Part shown: positions 10,179 through 58,591 of the stretch, one piece after another | Layout of the letters: every line of letters starts with the position of its first letter | Position numbering within the stretch: position 1 is the stretch's first letter | Sequence record: MN988561.1 | DNA length: 64,000 nucleotides | Direction: 5' to 3' (one strand) | Notes under the pieces: generated by a model | What the model saw: the letters and a program-made list of their open reading frames with translations, nothing else | Database searches by the model: none | Told to the model about the DNA's origin: nothing | Translations under genes and position numbers: made by a program

Positions 10179-10207
10179 CAGCGAATCTGACGTCTAAAAG
10201 CCTTCCT
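10179..10207 (+). promoter_or_regulatory. Conserved bipartite motif copy 1 (candidate phage promoter)
   Basis: CAGCGAA-N10-AAAAGCCTTCCT in the intergenic gap before the HD-PolA operon. Confidence 0.6.
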
Positions 10208-13800: not shown

Positions 13801-14228
13801 CAATGGTCTTTACTCACGACTCTCACGATATGGAATTCAGATGTCAACATCTATTCGAGACGATTGATACTGTTCTCGAAACTGCAGTTGATCTACCTAA
13901 GCGTAGATTTAATCTTCCGATGAAGATCGACTGGGAAATCGGTGTTAATCAGTCTGATGCAATTGAGTTCAAAGAAACATCTCGATTTGATGAAGGTCGA
14001 GGTCGTACGTATCACTTTGAATGCAATGAAAATGCAATGATGCCTGTATTCGATCGTCTAAAGAACTACTTTGACATCGAATATGAAGTCACTTCTAGAG
14101 AGACTGAGAGAGCATCGCTGAAAGAAATGTTCGTTGCAAGACGAGCATTCTCTAAGTATCTTGGTACAGATGTAACCGTCGTAGGTGGTAACCTCAAACT
14201 AGTGAAGAAAAATGGGATAAAAATATGA
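10899..14228 (+). CDS. polA: Family A DNA polymerase with N-terminal family-4 uracil-DNA glycosylase-like domain
   Basis: CHMCPL, GEAP, HPS UDG motifs; FDYE, YNVNYE, YCCYDS exonuclease motifs; DYSQAEVR, RRYAKVCSFSILYG, THDS polymerase motifs A/B/C. Confidence 0.93.
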   Translation: MSLEIESIINKVDLTSDVRVCHMCPLAEKFGGCDNLGRVSFEIVGQNPKVLLVGEAPAAEDLKSERPFSSQSGSFLRMAMAEIGINDYALANVIMCQPKSVNIYTPTPEESAHCKAHIQRFVEKYKPETVILLGRGAYEVILPESYFAGQSVTNVTKKKAIEIDGVRYGAAFHPSYIFRNGGKESPQYIDFLNRLRRLTQNSVDAEFIVPFKIVNLDQLDETLEEFDVYKELGFDYEGTSLDPYDVNYQVLGLGMSSMDKAVYIDFHREPTQEEKNKISDFIRKKQMWVYNVNYETKVTWSKLSNDLIRFHDAMTLVKIDCSPGSLKDNARKYLNAEIWEEIVGNLTTLFYDIFQFMKKIEEKSPKLYNACRQANMEAIYLLKEDTAEKITGGKKNPKVTRYRTKQADHADYISAKISALREFCSDEDIQRGFTKFPYEWAAVPPKILGEYCCYDSYYTLGLKNHLWDKYKSVYQYYITQGWLGSTMESYGLNWDDDKASEHERFYLVEATTCLNQIIQKLDFGEKTLDIHTRASMIFNDSSLPDARKLIDLKGIFNPGTPDKLKQKPFWDKYVTDFTTAISIYLVLSEQILMSPIIPDQAIELVDRQDLNKAIENLMSVDWTKYDGVDLKTAKSIQKLMMDLIGTLDEKIGWKLYAFRSDVLEWQYKAHETYGGLDIDNRETWTPEFELLYLLRRYKKVEKSKNTYINGKVGRARVWLSTVDDYQKPPVRLKRYFDVMEERQWKKYELQHNERWILDTEFNVAGANTKRWKAAIHTVPWGSELREIYASRWWDGLFMHYDYSQAEVRILAAISQDRALLEAFADPDTDIHMFVASRIWKKDPKDVTPAERRYAKVCSFSILYGKSIEGFATEHTKGDVAAAKRIFDDFYAAFPQVKEWIEKQHRDAKVSGKVFTLFGDPLYLDMSDPNGAMRDAQNWPIQSSSSCVAGWAIWMNYEFSRNRNIPILPMVFTHDSHDMEFRCQHLFETIDTVLETAVDLPKRRFNLPMKIDWEIGVNQSDAIEFKETSRFDEGRGRTYHFECNENAMMPVFDRLKNYFDIEYEVTSRETERASLKEMFVARRAFSKYLGTDVTVVGGNLKLVKKNGIKI

Positions 14229-14956
14229 GTCGAGCAAAATCACTGATCGACATGATTAAAGGAACCAAGAACGAGTCTGGTGACGATGACGACGAAATCT
14301 CAAATCGTCGTCGTGGTGGTACTTGGATTGATCCTCATCATGTTGACGCAGCATCCAAGAATCTGAAGCGTACTCAGTCATTCTACAAGAAGGCTAGTAA
14401 TGCTAGCTCAGTTGAAGATCAAGAGTATTGGTTAGCTCGAGTCTTTAACAAGAATGCTGTTGCTAAGAGAATCTCCTCTGGATTCTATAACAAGGAAGCT
14501 AAGGCAGGAGTCGTAGGCGTCGATGACGTTGAAGATCTGTCAGCATCTCTTGTTACAGGTAATCCAAGAGCATCGGGTCGTGTTACGACTAAGGATCACA
14601 CACGTAATCCTGAAGAGATCTTTGCTGCTAACCAGATCGTTAAAGCTCTCTACGATACGATTGACAAGAAGTGGCCTGGACGTCCTCAGAACAAGATGGT
14701 TCTGACATACTTCCTCAAGGTCAATAAAGCTGATCATCTTATTAACTTTAAGCTTCCATACGATGATCGTGTGGAAGAAATCATCTCTTCTATTGAGAAA
14801 TATGCTAAAGACAATAACTCCAAGATTACTTGGACTACTCCTAAGCAGTTTCAGAATTTTTCAGGTATTGAAGACAGAATGTATGCAAAGGTCATGCAGT
14901 TCCTAGCAGATAATGCTGTAGAATTGGGTGCTCTTATCATTCGAGGTAAGAAATAA
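14225..14956 (+). CDS. Hypothetical protein, weakly sigma-factor-like, with MSRA N-terminal motif
   Basis: DDVEDL and NPEEIF..QIVKALYDTIDK...KMVL resemble ECF sigma region 2 and the entry to region 4; paralogous to 15399-16055. Confidence 0.45.
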   Translation: MSRAKSLIDMIKGTKNESGDDDDEISNRRRGGTWIDPHHVDAASKNLKRTQSFYKKASNASSVEDQEYWLARVFNKNAVAKRISSGFYNKEAKAGVVGVDDVEDLSASLVTGNPRASGRVTTKDHTRNPEEIFAANQIVKALYDTIDKKWPGRPQNKMVLTYFLKVNKADHLINFKLPYDDRVEEIISSIEKYAKDNNSKITWTTPKQFQNFSGIEDRMYAKVMQFLADNAVELGALIIRGKK

Positions 14957-15303
14957 TGGACCAGAGAGTACTTGACGTTCTAGCTCAAGGATATATTAAT
15001 CGTGAGCTTACACTACCAGCCGCTGATCTATCTAAGGCTGTTATTTATATTGTTAATTATCATGTTAGACATAAGACAAGTGGACTGGCAGATCTAAAGA
15101 CTGCTTATGGTAGTCCTGAGTCTTCTAATCTGGCAGTTAGGTTCTACTCTACAGGTCTATTTAATGGTGTTGTAGATAATGATTCTAAGAGCTCAGATCT
15201 ATTCTGGTCTCTATTCAATTCGATGACTACATCTCTGATGATTGAGTCCATCAATGAATCGTTAGCTGAATCCTCGAAAGAAGTTGAAGTGATCGCCGAA
15301 TAA
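14956..15303 (+). CDS. Hypothetical protein
   Basis: 115-aa ORF translationally coupled (TAATG) to the upstream gene. Confidence 0.7.
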   Translation: MDQRVLDVLAQGYINRELTLPAADLSKAVIYIVNYHVRHKTSGLADLKTAYGSPESSNLAVRFYSTGLFNGVVDNDSKSSDLFWSLFNSMTTSLMIESINESLAESSKEVEVIAE

Positions 15304-15398
15304 AGGCGCTTACTTGTTGGGTAAATGGGTGCAGTTAGGCTCTTGGAGGGATTCTTATTCGGTGAGCCCTCCAAGGCTTCCAGAAAGAGGGTAATGTA

Positions 15399-16055
15399 AT
15401 GGCTAGCGATAGACAGATGAAAGGTTACATCTGGGGAGAGCAAATCCTGGATCATGCTCACATTGAGCATTATGCAAGGGCGATGAGATCCGATGATGTA
15501 CGTACCGAGGAGTACTGGTACCAGGCAGTATTTCATGGGAAGAACCACTCTAAGGTTCTTCAGTCGGAAGTCTTTCATAAGAAAATCCGCAACAACGTTA
15601 CAAATAAAGTAGAAGTTGAGACTCTGGTTTCTACTTCTAACTCTGACGTCGTTAATGATGTTCTAGCAGAGGAGAGAAAGAATGAAGTAAAATATTCTCG
15701 AGTTATCGAGGATGATAAGGTCGGTAATATGTCCGACTATCTTCCCGATGCAACTGTTGGGTTCTCAGTTATTATCAGAGAAATAGCTGACAAATGCAAC
15801 GATGATGAAATCAAGGTCCTGAGCTACTTTGTATGTCAGGAACATCTGGATAATATCCTATTCGAGGGGAATTCGATTCATTCATCAAACGATCGCTTCA
15901 ATCGTACGATCCTAGGTATCTGGGAAAAGAATGTGAAGAGCATCAATGATCTGAATCGATTTGTAGGTACTCGTGCTCGTGCTGATAAAGCTAGGTGGAG
16001 ACTCTGCAATCTCTTGAAGAAGGAGTATCCTGAACTCTTGTCAGGAAAACGATGA
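15399..16055 (+). CDS. Hypothetical protein, paralog of 14225-14956, candidate sigma-like factor
   Basis: EEYWYQAVF vs QEYWLARVF; IKVLSYF vs KMVLTYF; similar C-terminal helix-turn-helix-like spacing. Confidence 0.45.
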   Translation: MASDRQMKGYIWGEQILDHAHIEHYARAMRSDDVRTEEYWYQAVFHGKNHSKVLQSEVFHKKIRNNVTNKVEVETLVSTSNSDVVNDVLAEERKNEVKYSRVIEDDKVGNMSDYLPDATVGFSVIIREIADKCNDDEIKVLSYFVCQEHLDNILFEGNSIHSSNDRFNRTILGIWEKNVKSINDLNRFVGTRARADKARWRLCNLLKKEYPELLSGKR

Positions 16056-16291
16056 GTCCATCTAACAAGCCCTATGACCCAAAGTTAGACACAATCATCT
16101 ACGAAAATAGACATCCTGAAACGGGTTTGTGCATCTCGGTGCATAAATACGGAAGCAGTGAACCGAAGATCAAGTTAGGTCCAAGAATCGTCGGTGACGA
16201 CTCCAAACCTGTCTACTTGAAATTAGGTAGAATATCTATAAACGAGTTTTTGTGGATATCCGAGGTCCTAAAACCCTACGTTAAATCTTAG
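16052..16291 (+). CDS. Small protein, possibly PC4/YdbC-like ssDNA-binding fold
   Basis: CISVHKY..SEPKIKL...KLGRISINEF pattern. Confidence 0.4.
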   Translation: MSPSNKPYDPKLDTIIYENRHPETGLCISVHKYGSSEPKIKLGPRIVGDDSKPVYLKLGRISINEFLWISEVLKPYVKS

Positions 16292-16303
16292 AGGATCTAA
16301 AAC

Positions 16304-19300
16304 ATGCAACTTTCTCTGAAGCCAGTCTCTCCAGAATCTGTACTCTTGACTTCACAAGGAGAGGTCAAGTCGTATGAGACTCTGAACTTCAAGACAGGTC
16401 TACCTGTTCGAGACGGTCTCTTGTGCCAGAAGGTATTCGGACCGATTAGAGACTACGTATGTGAATGCGGCAAGTACGATGGTAAGAAATACCAGGGACA
16501 TACTTGTGAGAAGTGCGGTGTTACGGTAGCGAGTTCACGTGCTCGTACTGTGAGAATGGGTCATATTGATCTTCAAGTTCCCATTCTTAATCCGTTGATG
16601 ATCGAGTCGATCGAATCGATTATAGGTCTCCCATCCAGAAAGATGGAGGACTTTATGAAGAACAAGATCTGCCTGAAATTTTCAGCATCTGGTACAGGTA
16701 ATCTTGTTCGTAAGGACGGTACACGAGGTATCGCGTATTTTGTAGATCCTAAGGAATCTGATCCTCGATCTCCTACTCTGCAGCATACGAAGTCGTCTCT
16801 GGTTCTTTATGAACTCTTGACGGATCTCGATATTGAAGAGACGCTCAAAGTCAATGGATCCAAGATCCTGAAGACCTATGTGCAGAAGAACTTCCCTCTT
16901 TCTAATCTCTTCATTCGTTATCTACCGGTATCTCCAGCAGGATACCGTCCAGTCACTCGTATGAGAAACTACTATTCTCAGCATCCCAAGAATGACCTTT
17001 ATCAGAAGATCATTCGACGTACTCTGCGAGTGAAGGAACTGGTTAATATCAATGCAGACTCAATGATTCTTCAGGAAGAGGCAGGCATTCTGTATAAGTC
17101 TGTCGATCAACTCTTCACTGGAGGAGCTCGAGATGGCGATGGGAACCCTCTTCCTGGAACCATTGAGAAGATGATGGGTAAGAGAGGTATTCTCCGAGGA
17201 AATCTTCTCGGTAAGCGTACCGACTACTCTGGACGTTCAGTTATCACTTCAGCAGGTGATCGTGTAGAAGTGGACCAGATTGGTCTACCTCGTAAGATGG
17301 CATACATCTTGTTTCGTCCTTTCATTCTCCGTTATCTGATGACGGAGTATCTGGATCATTATACTGAAGCACTGAAGCACTACGAGAAGAAGACTGTTAT
17401 CGCACTGAAGTCTCTCGAGATGGTAGCTAAGGATTATCCGATCATCATGAATCGTGCTCCTACGCTTCATAGATACGGTGTAATGTCTTTCCGTACCAAG
17501 TTGGTAAATGGTAAGGCTATCCTCGTTCATCCGATTGTATGTTCTCCATTCAATGCAGACTTCGACGGAGATACTGTAGCTATCCACTTGCCTCTTTCAG
17601 CTAAGTCTGTTCAGGAGTGCAAAGATTATCTCATGCCTCAGAACAATCTCCTGTCTTCACTTGATGGTGATCCGATCATCAATATGTCGCACGAGATGGT
17701 TATCGGTCTTGCTATCATGTCTCGTATTAAGGATCATGATAAGGGATTCGGTACATTCCGACGTATGGATGAGCTCGAGTATCTTCATACTGTCACCAAT
17801 CCTCAGACTAGCCGTCCTACACTTGAGATCTACGATAGAATCAAGTGGAAAGATGAACGAGGAGTGACAGAGACGTGCTATGGTCGACTTCTTCTCGAGC
17901 AGACATTCAAGACCAAGAATCTTCCGAAGGACTTCTCTAAGAAGACTATTCGTCGGATGATCAGTGATGCGTACGACAAGCTTGGACCTGATGAACTGAT
18001 TAAGGTACTGGATGTAGCTACTCAGCTTTCATTCAAGTATGCTACGAACTCTGGTTTCTCAGTTTCGATTGATGATTGTAAGGTACCTTCTACGAAACCT
18101 GCTAAGATTGCGAAAGCTAGAGAGCAGGAAGCTGAGAATTATCGTCAATTCGATAACAATGAAATCAATCTTGCAGAGCGTCGAGAGAACAATATTCGTC
18201 TCTGGAACGATGTCTTTGAAGATCTTCATCACGATTGGATGAAAGAAGCAGGTGAGGACAATCCGGTAGTTCTTATGTATACTACTGGTGCTCGTGTTAG
18301 TAAGTCTCAGGTCAATCAGATCGGAGTCGCTAAGGGTCTTGTATCCAATGCACTCAATCAGATCATCGAGAAGCCTATGGTTAACTCCTTCCGTGAAGGA
18401 TTGTCGACGTTTGAGTACTTTGCATCTTGCTCTGGATCTCGTAAGTCCATGGCAGACAAGAAGAATCTGACTCCCAAGTCTGGTTATCTTACACGTCGAA
18501 TGATTACTGCTAGCCGAGATTTCTTCATTAATTCAGATGATTGTGGTACCGATAAGGGTATCATGCGTACGATGAAGTCCTCGTATGGACGTTATCGTTG
18601 CGACAATGGTGAGATGATTGGTACGAACAATAGTGAAGAACTCGTTAAGGTTCGTAGTCCGATTCATTGTGAGTCGCATGGTGGTATCTGCGTTAAGTGC
18701 TACGGTATTGATCCTGCTAAGCGTAAGATCGTCACGAAGGGGTCCAACGTAGGAGCTATTGCAGCTCACTCGTTGACTGAATCTACAACTCAGATGACGA
18801 TGCGTACCTTCCATACATCTGGTGCAGTCGTTCTGAAGGATAGTCCGATGGTCATTACTGCCCAGAAGGATGGTAAGATCAGCTGGGATACTCTTCATCC
18901 TGTCTACAGCAAGATTCATGTTGTTGCAGATATGGAAGATTGGGATACACCTCTCAATGATCGATTGACGTATACAGTTCATAACAAGATGTCTCGCATT
19001 CTTGTTAAGGATGGTCAGTCTGTCAAGAAGGGTGATCCTCTAGCGATCTACGTTGATGAAGATCTTGAGAGCGACGACGTCAGTGGATCGCTCCCTAAGA
19101 TTGAATCTCTGTATGAAGGTCGAGTACCTCCGAAAGCGTACAAGTCAGTTATCTCGAAGGTAGCTGGTAAGATTGGTATTAACATCGGAGATGAAGGTCT
19201 TAAGATCTTCGTTGATGGTGAATACCAAGGTACTGCTCATCCTAAGACTCCGGTATTCGTTGCTCAAGGTCAGTATGTTGAAGCTGGTCAGACTCTCTCG

Positions 19301-19687
19301 TTTGGTTCTCCAGACGTAGTAGGTTTGTTCAAGGAGACAAAGGATCTTGATCTCGCTTACAAGGTCTTTGAGAAGACTCTGATGGATATCTACAATAAGG
19401 AAGGTCTCCAGCCAGTACCAACTCATTCGGAGATGATCTTCAGAGCGATGTCTAATCTGGTATACACCGAGAGTGGTCCTTATGGTCTTCGATCCCATGG
19501 AGACAAGGGTAGCATTATGCTGAAGGGTATTACTCAGATTGGTGCGAATCATCCGTCCTGGTTGAAGTCAATCGGATTCGGATGGGTAGCTCAGACGATC
19601 AGAACTTCTGCTGTGAATCTTGCTACCACGTACGATCTTCCTACCGAACGTCTGATGTCTGGTGAATTGATTTACGAGGATAAATAA
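16304..19687 (+). CDS. rpoC: Phage-encoded multisubunit RNA polymerase beta-prime subunit
   Basis: CECGKY/CEKC zinc finger, NLLGKRTDYSGRSVI, NRAPTLHR, catalytic NADFDGD, bridge helix SGYLTRR, trigger loop TQMTMRTFH. Confidence 0.95.
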   Translation: MQLSLKPVSPESVLLTSQGEVKSYETLNFKTGLPVRDGLLCQKVFGPIRDYVCECGKYDGKKYQGHTCEKCGVTVASSRARTVRMGHIDLQVPILNPLMIESIESIIGLPSRKMEDFMKNKICLKFSASGTGNLVRKDGTRGIAYFVDPKESDPRSPTLQHTKSSLVLYELLTDLDIEETLKVNGSKILKTYVQKNFPLSNLFIRYLPVSPAGYRPVTRMRNYYSQHPKNDLYQKIIRRTLRVKELVNINADSMILQEEAGILYKSVDQLFTGGARDGDGNPLPGTIEKMMGKRGILRGNLLGKRTDYSGRSVITSAGDRVEVDQIGLPRKMAYILFRPFILRYLMTEYLDHYTEALKHYEKKTVIALKSLEMVAKDYPIIMNRAPTLHRYGVMSFRTKLVNGKAILVHPIVCSPFNADFDGDTVAIHLPLSAKSVQECKDYLMPQNNLLSSLDGDPIINMSHEMVIGLAIMSRIKDHDKGFGTFRRMDELEYLHTVTNPQTSRPTLEIYDRIKWKDERGVTETCYGRLLLEQTFKTKNLPKDFSKKTIRRMISDAYDKLGPDELIKVLDVATQLSFKYATNSGFSVSIDDCKVPSTKPAKIAKAREQEAENYRQFDNNEINLAERRENNIRLWNDVFEDLHHDWMKEAGEDNPVVLMYTTGARVSKSQVNQIGVAKGLVSNALNQIIEKPMVNSFREGLSTFEYFASCSGSRKSMADKKNLTPKSGYLTRRMITASRDFFINSDDCGTDKGIMRTMKSSYGRYRCDNGEMIGTNNSEELVKVRSPIHCESHGGICVKCYGIDPAKRKIVTKGSNVGAIAAHSLTESTTQMTMRTFHTSGAVVLKDSPMVITAQKDGKISWDTLHPVYSKIHVVADMEDWDTPLNDRLTYTVHNKMSRILVKDGQSVKKGDPLAIYVDEDLESDDVSGSLPKIESLYEGRVPPKAYKSVISKVAGKIGINIGDEGLKIFVDGEYQGTAHPKTPVFVAQGQYVEAGQTLSFGSPDVVGLFKETKDLDLAYKVFEKTLMDIYNKEGLQPVPTHSEMIFRAMSNLVYTESGPYGLRSHGDKGSIMLKGITQIGANHPSWLKSIGFGWVAQTIRTSAVNLATTYDLPTERLMSGELIYEDK

Positions 19688-19690
19688 AGG

Positions 19691-19888
19691 ATGCAAGACC
19701 TATCTCAACTATGTGAAGTTGAGATGGAGAAGTTAGTTGAAATACTAATGAGATCGACTCACTTGACACTCGACGGTGTTGAGCTGAGTCGATCTCATGA
19801 ATATCATAATAGCCCATCTGTCTCTACAATTAAAACTCATAAAGTCCTTGATGACTCATACATTACAGTTAGACTGAAATATGTATAA
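19691..19888 (+). CDS. Hypothetical protein
   Basis: 65-aa ORF with AAGG SD, coupled to neighbours. Confidence 0.55.
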   Translation: MQDLSQLCEVEMEKLVEILMRSTHLTLDGVELSRSHEYHNSPSVSTIKTHKVLDDSYITVRLKYV

Positions 19889-20594
19889 CTTGCAATACGA
19901 TGATGGAATTCTTAAATCAAATAGGGAGTCTCTCGTAAACATACGAGCTCCATTCTTCAAACGGATTGATCGACGATCTCGCAAGTCGTCCATCGAGAGA
20001 TTAATGATCTCACCTGATACAACAAGAAATTGTAGTCAGATTAAGAGATTTCTCGTTCCGTTCAACGATAAGTACTTGTACAGCATGCATGTGACTTATC
20101 GTGACGACTTAAAGTGTCAATCTATTTATGACACTAACAAGTCTCTCAAGCGAATCCTCCGATCTAAAATGTTAATGTCAGCTGTGAACAGGATAAATGA
20201 GTATCCTCAACTCAAAGCAGACATATTGTCTGTAATCAAGCTTGTAGTTAATTCTTGGGAGTTTGATGGTCTTATCACAGACATTGAATGGCTCCAGGAT
20301 GAAAATCTACTGGATACTGTGATATCTAAGTGGAAACTGAAGAAGTACGAATCCTCTACAGAGCGAGGGTCAGTGATCAATCTCTTAATAAAGAGTTTTG
20401 ATGGAGTTCCACTTAATCTTCTATCTCATCTAGAGATGAAGAAAATCAGTATTGAGGATACTGACATTGAGGACGTTAAGTTTAAATGTCCTCTGATATT
20501 AATGCGATCGAATTCATCTTGTGCAGGATTCATATCTAAGTCCTTGGATAAAGGACTACCTGTGAGTCTGTTCAAGATTGATATAAAAGAGTAA
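19881..20594 (+). CDS. Hypothetical protein
   Basis: 237-aa ORF ending at the convergent terminator. Confidence 0.7.
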   Translation: MYNLQYDDGILKSNRESLVNIRAPFFKRIDRRSRKSSIERLMISPDTTRNCSQIKRFLVPFNDKYLYSMHVTYRDDLKCQSIYDTNKSLKRILRSKMLMSAVNRINEYPQLKADILSVIKLVVNSWEFDGLITDIEWLQDENLLDTVISKWKLKKYESSTERGSVINLLIKSFDGVPLNLLSHLEMKKISIEDTDIEDVKFKCPLILMRSNSSCAGFISKSLDKGLPVSLFKIDIKE

Positions 20595-20650
20595 AAATAA
20601 AGGCCACTAGGCGGGACCCTTCTCGGAGGATTCACCTAGTGGCCTATTTT
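20593..20650. terminator. Bidirectional terminator between convergent early and late units
   Basis: AGGCCACTAGG/CCTAGTGGCCT stem with an A-tract on the left and a T-tract on the right. Confidence 0.8.
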
Positions 20651-20656
20651 TGTGTC

Positions 20657-20911
20657 TTATGGAAGAAGTGGTACGAAACTCTTCAGCTTATTGTACACAT
20701 CATCCTGCTTACCCATTTCAGTCGAATACTTATCAAGAATCGTCTGATTATCTGGGAATTCATTACCTTGATTAGCTACCCAGTCGACATAATCATGCCA
20801 ATCCTGGTCATCGTGAAGATCACGATGCTGCTTAATCAGATTTGCATATTCAGCATCTGTGAATTCATGCAATGATGAAAGCTTCTCAAGAATGTCTTTA
20901 GCTCTACTCAT
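20657..20911 (-). CDS. Small acidic protein with MSRA N-terminal motif (candidate internal head protein)
   Basis: GGAG-N6-ATG start giving MSRAKDILEKLSSLHE. Confidence 0.7.
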   Translation of the reverse strand: MSRAKDILEKLSSLHEFTDAEYANLIKQHRDLHDDQDWHDYVDWVANQGNEFPDNQTILDKYSTEMGKQDDVYNKLKSFVPLLP

Positions 20912-20922
20912 ATTAATCTCCG

Positions 20923-21378
20923 TCAAGCTACTACAGCGAGTTCATTACTTGGTACTTCATGAACGTCACCATCGACTTCGATCATGCAGATTTCACCGTT
21001 CACTTTAAGAACAGTGCCTGTACCGTGAACTGATTCAACAGTGTTATTAAGAAGGATCTCACGACCATTCTTATCTTCGCATTCGATGAATGCTCTCTGA
21101 CCATTGTCAGGAGTGTAATCAGGAGCTTTACCTGTTACGCCATCTGCATTCACATTGTTCCAGTGACCGTATGCGTCAAAGTATAGTACGTCGAGATCCG
21201 AACTATCTTGGAACTTGTCACGTTCAGCCATAGCATCCTTGAAAGGCATTGCTAGAGGACCTAGGATAACTTTATTGTTGGTACGATTAACAATGTACGT
21301 ACCAATGCGTTTACTGGTATCTTCGTCGATACCTGTGATCTTTGACAGATCACTAATCAGACCTGATGCTCTGCTCAT
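20923..21378 (-). CDS. Hypothetical protein with MSRA motif and C-terminal SH3/Tudor-like beta segment
   Basis: MSRASGLISDLSKITGIDE start; AGGA SD. Confidence 0.7.
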   Translation of the reverse strand: MSRASGLISDLSKITGIDEDTSKRIGTYIVNRTNNKVILGPLAMPFKDAMAERDKFQDSSDLDVLYFDAYGHWNNVNADGVTGKAPDYTPDNGQRAFIECEDKNGREILLNNTVESVHGTGTVLKVNGEICMIEVDGDVHEVPSNELAVVA

Positions 21379-21406: not shown

Positions 21407-21706
21407 TTAGAGACCAGCAGCCTTGCGCTTTCTCATAGTCATTTGACGCTTACGAGAGATAGCAGCTTGCTGTCCTCTCTTCTTACGAGCACCCATCTTC
21501 GCAGCCTTACGCTTAGCGATGATCTCACCGGCACTCATCTTGACGCAAGTCTTACCATCAATCTTGTAACCTGGAGGGCAATCAAGAATAACACTCTTGG
21601 CTCCACCTCTGAATGTTACTTTCTTCTTAGGAGCAGCTTCACTAGCTGGAATAGAAGACTCATAGTAAGCATCAATTTTAGTGATCAAATCTGCAGATTT
21701 AGACAT
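21407..21706 (-). CDS. Prohead core protein, T4 gp68-like
   Basis: Basic C-terminus RKRQMTMRKRKAAGL resembles the gp68 tail; CPPGYK motif; MSKSADLI start. Confidence 0.6.
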   Translation of the reverse strand: MSKSADLITKIDAYYESSIPASEAAPKKKVTFRGGAKSVILDCPPGYKIDGKTCVKMSAGEIIAKRKAAKMGARKKRGQQAAISRKRQMTMRKRKAAGL

Positions 21707-54371: not shown

Positions 54372-54689
54372 TCAGTCATCCTCGTCGTCTGAATCAACTT
54401 CTTCAGTGTAGGATACGCCAGCATCATCGAGCTTAGACTTCAGAGTTTCATAGAAGCTCTGAGCATCTTCAACACTCATCTTGACAACGCAGTCATAGAT
54501 TCCAAGTTCTCCTGTATCGTCAACAGAAGCTAGCTGATCAGCTACCCAGTCTTCAATCTCTTCAGGAGCATCTTCCATTGAATCAACAATATTCTCGCAT
54601 GCGATAGCGATCGCATCCAGTGTATCTTCATCATCTTCAACGATGGCATTAGGATACACCTTGTTAAGTAGTTCACTAGAACGCGACAT
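54372..54689 (-). CDS. Highly acidic small protein with MSRS motif (prohead core/internal protein candidate)
   Basis: MSRSSELLNKVYPNAIVE then Asp/Glu-rich sequence. Confidence 0.65.
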   Translation of the reverse strand: MSRSSELLNKVYPNAIVEDDEDTLDAIAIACENIVDSMEDAPEEIEDWVADQLASVDDTGELGIYDCVVKMSVEDAQSFYETLKSKLDDAGVSYTEEVDSDDEDD

Positions 54690-55646: not shown

Positions 55647-57059
55647 TTATGCCGTAATCGTGATCTTCGTGATGAAGTTCGGTACGAGAACGTCGATAGC
55701 AGCCCATACTGCAGCAGCACGCTGGTTGATGAGCGGGTTAACGCCACCAGGTAGAGCTGAAGTAACAACGAGCGGCATGTACGGAGCGTACACGAGTGCA
55801 GACTCGAACGGAGATACTGCATTGTACATGCAGAGGATGGTGTCTGCGTTCAGAACGTTACCGTTAGGAACACGAACAACAGTCATACCGTCGAGAGTAC
55901 CGAAGATGTGAGGACCAATGGTCGAACCATCAGAGATCTTCACGAATCCAGGAAGCGTCTGGATGATAGCTGCAGCGTTACGTCCAGCGATCATGACGTT
56001 AACAGTACCACGACCAGCTACTGAGAGGATGTTAGCTTCTGCAACAGAAAGCTGATCCTTCAGAGACTGCTTGTGTTCGAAGTACGATACACCATCAGGT
56101 GCAGTCTTCGACCAGTTAACGTTACCGATAGCCTTAGCAGCTAGCTGAGCAATACCTGTGTTAACAGTTTCAGCGTTGATAGCTGATACGAGGTCGGTAG
56201 CAACTTCGTCTTCAGCGATCATGCCGAAACGACGACGTAGAGCATATGACTGCTCAAGACCGATGGTATCCTTCAGAGCGAATACGCGAGCATTAACGCT
56301 CTTCGTATCGAGCTTGAAGAGGATCTTCGGAATATCAGTCGAAGCTTCGAAGTCCGTAGCGAAGGTTAGAACGATGTTCTTACCAGCGGTAGGGTTAGCA
56401 GCGAAGTTAAGAACTACAGCACCAGTCGTGTAGTTAACGGTACCAGAGATACCGCGACCTAGGATATTACCCAGACCGTCATCGATAGAAGCTGGCAGAC
56501 CAGATACAGTTGTTTCAACTGTCAGCGATCCTGGACGAATCGGAGGATTCGAGATCGTGATGTTGTAAGCAAGCTGTGCATCAACAGTAACAACTGGAGC
56601 CATCGTTAGACGGTCACCAGCGAAGCCCTGAGGAGCTACCTGTTCGATGTCAGTCGCACCAGCGATCATCTGACCTGCAGTAACGTTACCACGAGTCGTC
56701 TGAGCGATGACGTTCTTGTAGTATACAGTACCGCGTTCTTCATCGATCGGCTGAACCGATGCGATAGCTGAAAGTGGCGATGTACCATAAGCTACAGTGA
56801 TAACGTCGAATGCAACGTTAGGGATCTTACCTAGCTGAGCTAGTGTACCGTCTTCTTCGCAGAGAGCCTTATAGACTTCGAAAGATTCGAGCTGCTTACC
56901 AAGAGCGTATACGTCCTGAGCAGTGATCGAACGAACCTTCGAAAGTACAGATTTACTTTCAAGAGACTCAACGAAGGTACGGTACTGCTTGAGATAACGC
57001 TCAGCGTCCTTCTCAACCTTCTGACCCTTCAGTTGTTCAGCAATAGAGATGTCACTCAT
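55647..57059 (-). CDS. Major capsid protein (T4 gp23-like)
   Basis: SVQPI....G.VYY, ARVFALK, DLVSAINAE, YAPYMPL; strong codon bias. Confidence 0.93.
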   Translation of the reverse strand: MSDISIAEQLKGQKVEKDAERYLKQYRTFVESLESKSVLSKVRSITAQDVYALGKQLESFEVYKALCEEDGTLAQLGKIPNVAFDVITVAYGTSPLSAIASVQPIDEERGTVYYKNVIAQTTRGNVTAGQMIAGATDIEQVAPQGFAGDRLTMAPVVTVDAQLAYNITISNPPIRPGSLTVETTVSGLPASIDDGLGNILGRGISGTVNYTTGAVVLNFAANPTAGKNIVLTFATDFEASTDIPKILFKLDTKSVNARVFALKDTIGLEQSYALRRRFGMIAEDEVATDLVSAINAETVNTGIAQLAAKAIGNVNWSKTAPDGVSYFEHKQSLKDQLSVAEANILSVAGRGTVNVMIAGRNAAAIIQTLPGFVKISDGSTIGPHIFGTLDGMTVVRVPNGNVLNADTILCMYNAVSPFESALVYAPYMPLVVTSALPGGVNPLINQRAAAVWAAIDVLVPNFITKITITA

Positions 57060-57079: not shown

Positions 57080-57973
57080 TTACTTAGAGAATGATTCCAT
57101 GAGACGGCTGGTCAGACTTCCACCACGTGTGCGGAGCTCAGATTCCTGATGATCTTCATTTAGAGATTCATTCTGGACTGGCTTCTTAGTCTTACTAGTT
57201 GCATCGTAACGATCAGCAACTGCATCACCCTTGATTGATTCAAGGAGAGACTTAGTTTCTGAAACACCATGCTTCTTGACCATTGCCTCAACTGCTTCGG
57301 ACTTAACTCCGAATTCGGTAGCGATAGATTCAACATCCTTACGGAATGCTTCATCCTTAGACTTAGAAACGATAGACTCAGTCATATCGAAAGCCTTAGA
57401 GATGTCTTCTGGCGTACCTAATGCAGCATAGCTCTCTAGGGTAGCCTTCAGATTCTTAATTTCTTCAGGATTACCTAGTGCCTCGTATTTACCGAGGGAT
57501 TCAAGCTTACTACCTAGCTCTTCAAGATTGCCAAGTTCAGAATAGTTACTGACAACATCTAGCATCCCACTGAGTTCGTCAGGAGATCCAAGATCCTTGT
57601 AATCTTCTACCAGAGTGTCGATACGGTTGAAAGCCTCAGTGAGCTCTTCTGGAGTACCAAACTCTTTATACTGAACAAGCATAGCTTCAGCTTCATCTAG
57701 AGCCTTAGCAACCTGTTCAGCTGTACCTAGATCCTTGTATCCAGATACGGTTGTCTGGAGATCAGCGACCTGACCTTCGAGAACAGTAACCTTGCGATTA
57801 CTATTAGCGACGGACTCTTCAAGTCTACCGATTTCCTTGTCCTTGAGTGCAATCGACTGACTAAGTGCATCAGCTTCATTCGTCTTAGACTTAACTGTGT
57901 TCAGAGCCTCATCAAGTGCTAGCTGGAGCTTAGCCTTGTCCTTTGAGAGAGACTCTAGTAATTCTGTGCTCAT
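57080..57973 (-). CDS. Nested in-frame scaffold protein
   Basis: Internal GGAG-N6-ATG giving MSTELLES at codon 207. Confidence 0.6.
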   Translation of the reverse strand: MSTELLESLSKDKAKLQLALDEALNTVKSKTNEADALSQSIALKDKEIGRLEESVANSNRKVTVLEGQVADLQTTVSGYKDLGTAEQVAKALDEAEAMLVQYKEFGTPEELTEAFNRIDTLVEDYKDLGSPDELSGMLDVVSNYSELGNLEELGSKLESLGKYEALGNPEEIKNLKATLESYAALGTPEDISKAFDMTESIVSKSKDEAFRKDVESIATEFGVKSEAVEAMVKKHGVSETKSLLESIKGDAVADRYDATSKTKKPVQNESLNEDHQESELRTRGGSLTSRLMESFSK

Positions 57974-58591
57974 GTTATTCTCCGAAATATTATCATCGGT
58001 ATCGATGTTGTCTTGGTTTTCACTTTCGACTAGTACAGGAATAGCCGTCGGTACTCCTGGTCTCTGCACAAAGTCGAATCCTTCTAACTTAAACGTATCA
58101 GGATCTATGACCTTGGAACCACTCTTGGTTGTTCCCTTGTACTCACCAGTTGCTCTTGAAGATACTTTAAGTCGAACTCCACCACGTAGTAGTGCATTTA
58201 GATTGCGACCAGCATCAGTATTTAGGACCTGGATTTCTCCCATCCCAACACCTGTATCTTCGTCGATCCAAAGCTTAGTGACTTTGTGACTTGCTTTACC
58301 TTCAAGTAATGATTGATCATCGAGAGGTTGCTCGTGACCAATTGTACCTAATACTTCACCGTAGGACATTCTTTCGGCACTCTCGAAGATCGCTTTCTCC
58401 CAGAGCTTGTCTGAATAGAATCGACCGTTGAGAGACTCACCGTTAACTGTAAAGAATGGTCCTGCGACTCTCGCTAGGATATTGACACCGTCAACAACAC
58501 GATCTTCTTCCGACTCAGTCATAACCGTCCAAGGCTTCATATGCTTAGGATCGATATTGAATGAGTCAACGATCAGTTTCTTTTCAGACAT
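57080..58591 (-). CDS. Prohead protease (gp21-like) fused to scaffold
   Basis: NGRFY, GHE, SHKV, VSSRATG, FDFVQRPG, then coiled coil. Confidence 0.9.
   Translation of the reverse strand: MSEKKLIVDSFNIDPKHMKPWTVMTESEEDRVVDGVNILARVAGPFFTVNGESLNGRFYSDKLWEKAIFESAERMSYGEVLGTIGHEQPLDDQSLLEGKASHKVTKLWIDEDTGVGMGEIQVLNTDAGRNLNALLRGGVRLKVSSRATGEYKGTTKSGSKVIDPDTFKLEGFDFVQRPGVPTAIPVLVESENQDNIDTDDNISENNMSTELLESLSKDKAKLQLALDEALNTVKSKTNEADALSQSIALKDKEIGRLEESVANSNRKVTVLEGQVADLQTTVSGYKDLGTAEQVAKALDEAEAMLVQYKEFGTPEELTEAFNRIDTLVEDYKDLGSPDELSGMLDVVSNYSELGNLEELGSKLESLGKYEALGNPEEIKNLKATLESYAALGTPEDISKAFDMTESIVSKSKDEAFRKDVESIATEFGVKSEAVEAMVKKHGVSETKSLLESIKGDAVADRYDATSKTKKPVQNESLNEDHQESELRTRGGSLTSRLMESFSK

Follow-up and report, generated by a model that had tools for sequence, protein, structure and literature searches.

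We analysed a 64,000-nucleotide stretch of sequence record MN988561.1 (the window, in whose coordinates positions are given), in which two small genes of related sequence precede the gene of an RNA polymerase beta-prime homolog. A preliminary description of this DNA had read their products as sigma-like paralogs, only one of them carrying a putative packaging tag, and had proposed a phage sigma switch. We find that both proteins belong to an undescribed family that is strictly linked to beta-prime genes in phages without a detectable beta gene, and that the modelled C-terminal domain of one of them resembles region 4 of sigma factors.

The gp338-gp336 locus

Region 14000-20600 of the window shares 100% identity with the Rhizobium phages RHph_TM30, TM40, TM2_3B and TM61. 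Genomes of the TM30 type have a size of ~207 kb and belong to the genus Cuauhnahuacvirus of the Kleczkowskaviridae. We use the gene names of record NC_070966, which is not letter-identical to the window and whose coordinate offsets shift along it. The order at the locus is PolA (with a fused UDG domain), gp338, gp337, gp336, gp335 and gp334, the last encoding beta-prime, and the start codon of gp338 overlaps the stop codon of PolA (ATGA). The two open reading frames (ORFs) of the preliminary description, starting at 14225 and 15399, are present as described and correspond to gp338 and gp336, both annotated as hypothetical proteins in NC_070966. The divergent paralog gp338 (14225..14956, + strand, 243 residues) consists of a leader (residues 1-17, MSRAKSLIDMIKGTKNE), an acidic stretch and the family core (residues ~28-235). 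gp336 (15399..16055, + strand, 218 residues), the conserved family member, comprises an N-domain (residues 5-65, with the EEYWYQ.VFHG block), a variable linker (residues 66-115) and a sigma-4-like domain. gp334 (16304..19687, + strand) is a full-length beta-prime homolog of 1127 residues with Rpb1 domains 1-5.

gp338 and gp336 are distant paralogs

A HMMER profile built from gp336 and one relative retrieved 43 family proteins at E<=1e-3 among 1.84 billion representatives, nearly all of them 205-260 residues long. A set of 37 full-length members was aligned (alignment A3), and this alignment served as the profile for later searches.

The sequence strings from which the paralogy had been proposed are real: EYW(L/Y)..VF occurs at residues 67-74 of gp338 and 38-45 of gp336, and the C-terminal halves share MVLTYF and KVLSYF, respectively. 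Pairwise BLASTP of the two proteins was weakly significant (E 6e-5 over 55 residues). When the family hidden Markov model (HMM) was run against all 2115 six-frame ORFs (>=40 residues) of the phage and two Vibrio phage loci, gp336 (7.9e-79) and gp338 (4.9e-13) were its matches in TM30, with no others. hhalign aligned gp338 with A3 at 97% probability (E 8.4e-11, 135 columns), placing gp338 residues 51-195 on family positions 23-176, and a Foldseek search of BFVD with the gp336 model matched an independently predicted model of a 243-residue gp338-type protein (E 8e-5). Since profile HMM, hhalign and Foldseek all agree, gp336 and gp338 are true but distant paralogs, that is, diverged copies. gp338 equals the family core plus ~30 extra N-terminal residues, made up of MSRAKSLIDMIKGTKNE, an acidic run and N.RRGG.

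Related phages have conserved the gp338-type copy as well. An alignment of its clade (A6) shows conserved N-terminal blocks (N.RRGGTW, HHVD and EYWLARVFN) and the first helices of the C-terminal domain (PEEI, MVLTY). Where the gp336 clade has basic residues in the last helix, the gp338 clade has hydrophobic, acidic or neutral ones (G-I-..-M-Y..V..FL), which makes the two clades functionally distinct. Judged from these substitutions, gp338 is unlikely to read DNA in the way gp336 may, and with its putative recognition-helix residues lost it may not be a promoter-recognition factor.

A family linked to beta-prime without detectable beta

The location before beta-prime held wherever it could be read: in every context the family gene stands directly ahead of beta-prime. 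On short metagenomic contigs the gene following the family member encodes the N-terminus of beta-prime in seven of seven cases, with 36-73% identity to beta-prime of TM30. Three longer contigs (L028, L030 and L032), with 42-54% identity to TM30 in the N-terminal region of beta-prime, keep the order PolA, gp338-like, gp337-like, gp336-like, beta-prime, gp333-like and gp332-like, and contig L022 shows the same module order. As the module with both copies is kept across related contigs, the duplication is older than this phage group and both copies have been maintained. The GenBank phages with a family member are those of Cuauhnahuacvirus, the Vibrio phages Va2, 150E35-1 and 1.031.O, and E. coli phage IME392; in each of them the gene stands immediately before beta-prime or, where beta-prime is split, before its N-terminal half. 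The latter arrangement is seen in IME392 (vB_EcoM_IME392, contig L035, 4329-4985), where a family member of 218 residues (HMM E 1.7e-9) directly precedes the N-terminal half.

A beta gene was not detected with PF00562 (E<=1) in the genomes of TM30, Va2, 150E35-1, IME392 or RP13; the same search matched all 14 control genomes. The family is thus firmly and strictly linked to beta-prime lacking a beta partner, and its co-evolution with such a phage-encoded, lone beta-prime is the best explanation of these contexts. IME392 and the Ralstonia phage RP13 are both devoid of a detectable beta gene, so that phages with beta-prime only span several host genera.

Other searches were less productive. In GenBank phages, tblastn with gp338 and gp336 returned the same genus only, a word-index protein search yielded one relative for each protein, and a search of viral contigs for related loci gave no confirmed relative. 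In our literature searches, neither these proteins nor a lone beta-prime of these phages came up. The family, with two domains in ~210 residues, is unnamed and undescribed.

A predicted sigma-4-like fold in the C-terminal domain of gp336

Neither gp338 nor gp336 matched an entry of Pfam (E<=1), NCBIfam or PHROGs, and a Pfam scan of the 37 aligned members listed 25 families without a sigma family among them. The whole TM30 genome gave no match to Sigma70_r2 (PF04542) or to r4_2. Searched against all PDB chain sequences (E<=10), the family profile returned three unrelated chance rows only, and hhalign of the family with the recognisable sigma factor of Vibrio phage 150E35-1 gave a probability of 0.3%. 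The strings in gp338 that had been likened to extracytoplasmic function (ECF) sigma factors found no sequence-level support either: DDVEDL falls into the variable low-confidence linker, and NPEEIF..IVKALYDTIDK forms the first helix of the C-terminal domain.

The AlphaFold2 model of gp336, computed with A3 as alignment, has a mean predicted local distance difference test score (pLDDT) of 81.8, rising to ~90 in both domains. In it, an N-domain of five short helices (residues 14-65) is connected through a variable linker to a helical C-terminal domain (residues 116-214). The best-conserved block of the family lies in the N-domain and reads HY..AL, then EEYWYQ.VFHG, then EIFQKK.RN. High-ranking structural matches of the model cover residues 110-218 only and leave the N-domain outside; searches of the ESM Atlas with the whole protein and with the N-domain gave no usable lead. 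At E<=0.001, Foldseek with the whole gp336 model had no match in the PDB, an outcome that the two-domain geometry probably explains. When the C-terminal domain was ranked structurally, sigma region 4 accounted for 26 of the best 30 rows and stood 1-2 Z units above LuxR-type domains, and re-ranking of the Foldseek candidates again placed sigS, sigE and sigH on top. The last helix of the gp336 clade carries a conserved, Arg/Lys-rich motif, G-[TS]-R..(D/E).AR, as a recognition helix would have. A sigma-4-like helix-turn-helix fold of the gp336 C-terminal domain is thus well supported by the model.

Of the sigma-like nature claimed for these proteins, region 4 stands at the level of the predicted fold, in the C-terminal domain of gp336, whereas Pfam, NCBIfam, PHROGs, the PDB sequence search and hhalign all failed to find a sigma-2 domain, so that region 2 has no counterpart at the sequence level. 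We do not regard the proteins as established members of the sigma-70 family.

A promoter-like motif and a remodelled beta-prime

A bipartite promoter-like motif, xGCGAA-N13/14-AGCCTTCCT, is present ~30 times in the TM30 genome, in most cases ahead of genes. One copy heads the operon that holds PolA, gp338, gp336 and beta-prime. In the copy at 10179-10207 of the window (position 10186) the spacer differs from that in NC_070966 and both boxes are kept. The downstream box is also kept at syntenic intergenic sites of related contigs (L032, 576 and 12664; L030, 4014 and 14843). In many copies an inverted repeat brackets the AGCCTTCC box.

Between gp337 and gp336 (15304..15398, + strand) lies a spacer with a hairpin of 12-13 bp, followed by a AGGCTTCC box 24 nucleotides before the start codon. 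This box differs from the downstream promoter box by one base, and relatives keep a spacer of 61-124 nucleotides ahead of the gp336 position. As a significant structure the hairpin was rejected, its fold energy being no better than that of shuffled sequences (z -0.68). Promoters of the sigma-70 type were absent from the + strand of the spacers ahead of gp338 and gp336.

A helix-turn-helix domain in this setting could also belong to ordinary DNA-binding regulators, i.e. activators or repressors with a sigma-4-like or LuxR-type domain that control the beta-prime operon or a class of genes and are not polymerase subunits. Against such regulators speak the structural ranking of sigma region 4 above LuxR-type domains, by the margin and the 26 of 30 rows given above, and the strict, often overlapping placement of the family gene upstream of beta-prime in Rhizobium, Vibrio and E. 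coli phages, which points to a stoichiometric partner. Moreover, they would leave ~30 promoter-like sites that are not of the sigma-70 type in a phage that has no recognisable sigma factor of its own. We consider the regulators unlikely.

The phage beta-prime itself differs from its bacterial counterparts. Its clamp helices (residues ~228-290) are near-invariant in bacteria and altered at most positions across the phage clade (alignment A5), and just behind them, in the rudder region, five residues are missing in the phage clade. In bacteria, the clamp helices are the docking site of sigma region 2. Such remodelling would be in keeping with a partner of the phage's own and with host sigma factors binding poorly.

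These altered helices would also fit a family of assembly or exclusion factors, which would bind nascent phage beta-prime or host beta and either aid hybrid assembly or exclude host sigma, without reading DNA. The gene order, including the split half in IME392, suggests co-translational pairing with the N-terminus of beta-prime, the family is most conserved in the N-domain and not in the helix-turn-helix, and the gp338 clade is conserved despite its lost basic recognition residues. The Arg/Lys-rich G-[TS]-R..(D/E).AR motif kept by the gp336 clade, however, is hard to explain without nucleic-acid binding, and a role confined to assembly or exclusion seems to us quite unlikely.

A recurrent leader at the N-terminus of gp338

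As previously described, gp338 starts with MSRAKSLI and the start of gp336 lacks this motif. We regard the leader of gp338 (14225..14275, + strand, MSRAKSLIDMIKGTKNE), in which residue 17 is a Glu, as a candidate for a capsid targeting sequence. Its consensus, M-S-[RK]-[AS]-x-x-[LIV]-[LI]-x-x-[LIV], opens ten ORFs of TM30, compared with none in the reversed genome and none in five shuffled genomes, and the recurrence of the leader in TM30 is firm. The ten proteins have no similarity past residue 20, and the codons vary among the leaders, which indicates selection on the peptide and not on the nucleotides. In seven of the ten, [LIV]-x-E ends at residue 9-19 (in four exactly at 11-13), as opposed to 22% of long ORFs.

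One of the carriers, gp329 (21407..21706, - strand, 99 residues, leader MSKSADLITKIDAYYE), matches a PHROG for head scaffolding and carries the annotation prohead core protein. Two further leader genes adjoin it, gp330 (20923..21378, - strand, 151 residues, leader MSRASGLISDLSKITGIDE) and gp331 (20657..20911, - strand, 84 residues, leader MSRAKDILEKLSSLHE). The acidic gp285 (54372..54689, - strand, 105 residues, leader MSRSSELLNKVYPNAIVE) is encoded in the head module, where the gene of the major capsid protein lies three genes upstream. Outside the window, an unannotated ORF of 85 residues with the leader MSKASEVIKKLNE is found between tRNA-Gln and tRNA-Gly (NC_070966 131177-131434; L010:11177-11434). 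The leader-bearing gp356 and gp351 are also located among tRNA genes. A shared late-promoter motif upstream of the leader genes, TTAAATAAA, was dismissed, as the genome contains two copies only.

The genome also encodes a head maturation protease (57080..58591, - strand) with a Peptidase_S77 domain of the T4 gp21 type (PF03420, 34.7 bits at a cut-off of 27), and the capsid protein scores 60.1 bits with PF07068 (Gp23). The presence of a prohead protease of this type makes packaging plausible. The major capsid protein (55647-57059, - strand) has L-C-E at residues 66-68, a possible maturation site; gp23 of T4 loses a propeptide of 65 residues, and the L-C-E of the TM30 protein is close to that position. 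A proteome of the TM30 phage was not found in the literature.

In T4, internal proteins of unrelated sequence enter the scaffolding core by means of a capsid targeting sequence of 10 residues, gp21 cleaves after L/I-X-E, and the injected Alt modifies the host RNA polymerase (PMC9026906, PMC3012670). By analogy, the MSRA start is supported as a recurrent leader with the hallmarks of a capsid targeting sequence of the T4 type: like the T4 internal proteins and Alt, the TM30 carriers combine a short N-terminal leader on unrelated proteins with a gp21-type protease expected to cut after L/I-X-E. The sequence of the leader, MS[RK][AS]..LL..L, is different from that of the T4 IPIII leader. gp338, a candidate for packaging, can be likened to Alt, which is packaged, injected and acts on RNA polymerase; it differs from Alt in being a paralog of a polymerase-linked factor and not an ADP-ribosyltransferase.

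Alternatively, MS(R/K)(A/S)..LL..L could be a degron, a membrane-association helix or a translation feature instead of a packaging signal, and gp338 would then stay intracellular like gp336. gp338 is encoded in an operon of replication genes, where it overlaps the PolA stop codon; several leader genes lie among early-region or tRNA genes and not among head genes, gp338 itself is devoid of an [LIV]xE site, and gp338 orthologs exist without the leader. Scattered genes are, on the other hand, also known for the internal proteins of T4. Further points against a function unrelated to packaging are the conservation of the leader as amino acids and not as nucleotides, the head scaffold/core homolog among its carriers with three others flanking it or sitting in the head module, the encoded S77 protease, the enrichment of L/I-x-E (7/10 versus 22%), and a similar leader in L032 on the scaffold homolog and its neighbours. 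On balance, we find it rather doubtful that the leader serves such other purposes.

Further genes of the module

The two paralogs are separated by gp337 (14956..15303, + strand), a conserved small protein of 115 residues that occupies the same position in L022, L030 and L032. A small ORF, gp335 (16052..16291, + strand, 79 residues), is located between gp336 and beta-prime and is absent from this place in L022, L028, L030 and L032. On the 3' side of beta-prime follow gp333 (19691..19888, + strand), a conserved small protein of 65 residues, and gp332 (19881..20594, + strand), the conserved last gene of the module, with 237 residues if translated from position 19881. Read from this start, gp332 overlaps the end of gp333 and aligns with homologs of three related phages from residue 1-2; by this comparison the RefSeq start (196 residues) is probably too far downstream. 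PolA, upstream of the module, contains an intein in L030 (4045-8079) and is split into pieces in L028 (2912-7314).

Discussion

The sigma switch proposed in the preliminary description finds partial support: the paralogy, the link to beta-prime, the predicted region 4 fold and the recurrent leader agree with it, whereas the failure to detect a sigma-2 domain and the lost basic helix residues of gp338 do not. In place of two alternating sigma factors, we tentatively propose a combined mechanism in which gp336 acts as specificity subunit of a hybrid polymerase and gp338 as a packaged modulator, with the two separated in time; we give this combination slightly less than an even chance. In this mechanism, the phage beta-prime would replace that of the host, forming a hybrid core with host alpha2, beta and omega. 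gp336, made from the gene just upstream, would be the dedicated initiation or specificity subunit of the hybrid enzyme. Its C-terminal sigma-4-like helix-turn-helix would read the upstream box (xGCGAA) of the bipartite motif, and its conserved N-domain might grip the polymerase, the downstream box (AGCCTTCC) or both. gp338, which retains the N-domain and the first half of the C-domain, would more likely be a polymerase-binding modulator or an alternative factor than another sigma of the classical type. Only in the TM30 lineage would gp338 have gained the head-targeting leader of internal head proteins, and it would then probably travel inside the capsid and enter the host together with the DNA, like Alt of T4.

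Several observations weigh against this proposal. No sequence method among those used ties the family to sigma factors, and the N-domain of gp336, with five short helices in ~55 residues, is unlike the long-helix sigma-2 domain. The model of gp338 is poor (pLDDT 67.6, with low values after residue 199), lacks a sigma match and finds generic helical matches only. A very diverged beta gene could escape PF00562. Furthermore, the leader of gp338 ends with K-N-E (residues 15-17) and thus without the canonical hydrophobic residue before Glu, and the gp338 orthologs of L028, L030 and L032 start differently and without leader, so that packaging, if it occurs, is not conserved for this paralog. P0002, a protein 76% identical to gp338, does carry the leader; its presence there and its absence from the three orthologs indicate that the tag was acquired recently in the TM30 lineage. 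As described for L032, a similar leader is found there on other genes, namely the scaffold homolog and that gene's neighbours.

The proposal can be extended to a takeover in two steps. gp338 delivered by the virion would act on the host polymerase immediately upon entry of the DNA and switch on the operon of beta-prime and gp336; the resulting hybrid polymerase would then read GCGAA-N14-AGCCTTCC and be blind to host sigma. We regard this extension as speculative and give it a low probability. To our knowledge, a remodelling of the polymerase by subunit swapping in two steps has not been described for any phage.

Among known systems, Group 4 (ECF) sigma factors offer close parallels in architecture. 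They share with the family a length of ~200 residues, two helical domains with a variable linker, a four-helix C-terminal helix-turn-helix that superposes on region 4, and a bipartite promoter-like motif. In contrast to them, the family has no profile match to Sigma70_r2, r4 or r4_2, its N-domain is shorter, is built of five short helices and bears another conserved motif (EEYWYQ.VFHG), and its C-domain has an insertion of ~30 residues. Its proposed partner is also a different one, a phage beta-prime with remodelled clamp helices.

A fifth subunit of the non-virion RNA polymerase of jumbo phages has been shown (AR9 gp226) or proposed (phiKZ gp68) to confer promoter specificity (PMC7598289). 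As in our proposal, these are phage proteins without sequence similarity to sigma factors that serve a multisubunit-type polymerase encoded by the phage. AR9 and phiKZ, however, encode both beta and beta-prime, in pieces, and need no host subunit, and gp226 and gp68 are larger than the family members. Similarity to gp226 or gp68 was found neither in the family profile search of PDB chains (E<=10) nor among the best 50 structural rows. Phage sigma factors such as phiEco32 gp36, SPO1 gp28/gp34 and T4 gp55 bind the unmodified host core, unlike the factor proposed here, which comes with a replacement beta-prime. phiEco32 gp36 and SPO1 gp28/gp34 are recognisable by sigma-70 profiles, T4 gp55 is not.

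Phages are known to redirect transcription by their own sigma factors, by small modifiers of the host enzyme or by complete polymerases of their own. If our reading is true, it would add a fourth route, in which one catalytic subunit and the initiation factor of the host enzyme are swapped. Being small, conserved and always located beside beta-prime, the genes of this family offer a concrete handle on this route, and their occurrence in Rhizobium, Vibrio and E. coli phages makes it testable in tractable hosts. The leader is a candidate capsid-targeting signal outside the T4 group and could help to find injected proteins in other phages.

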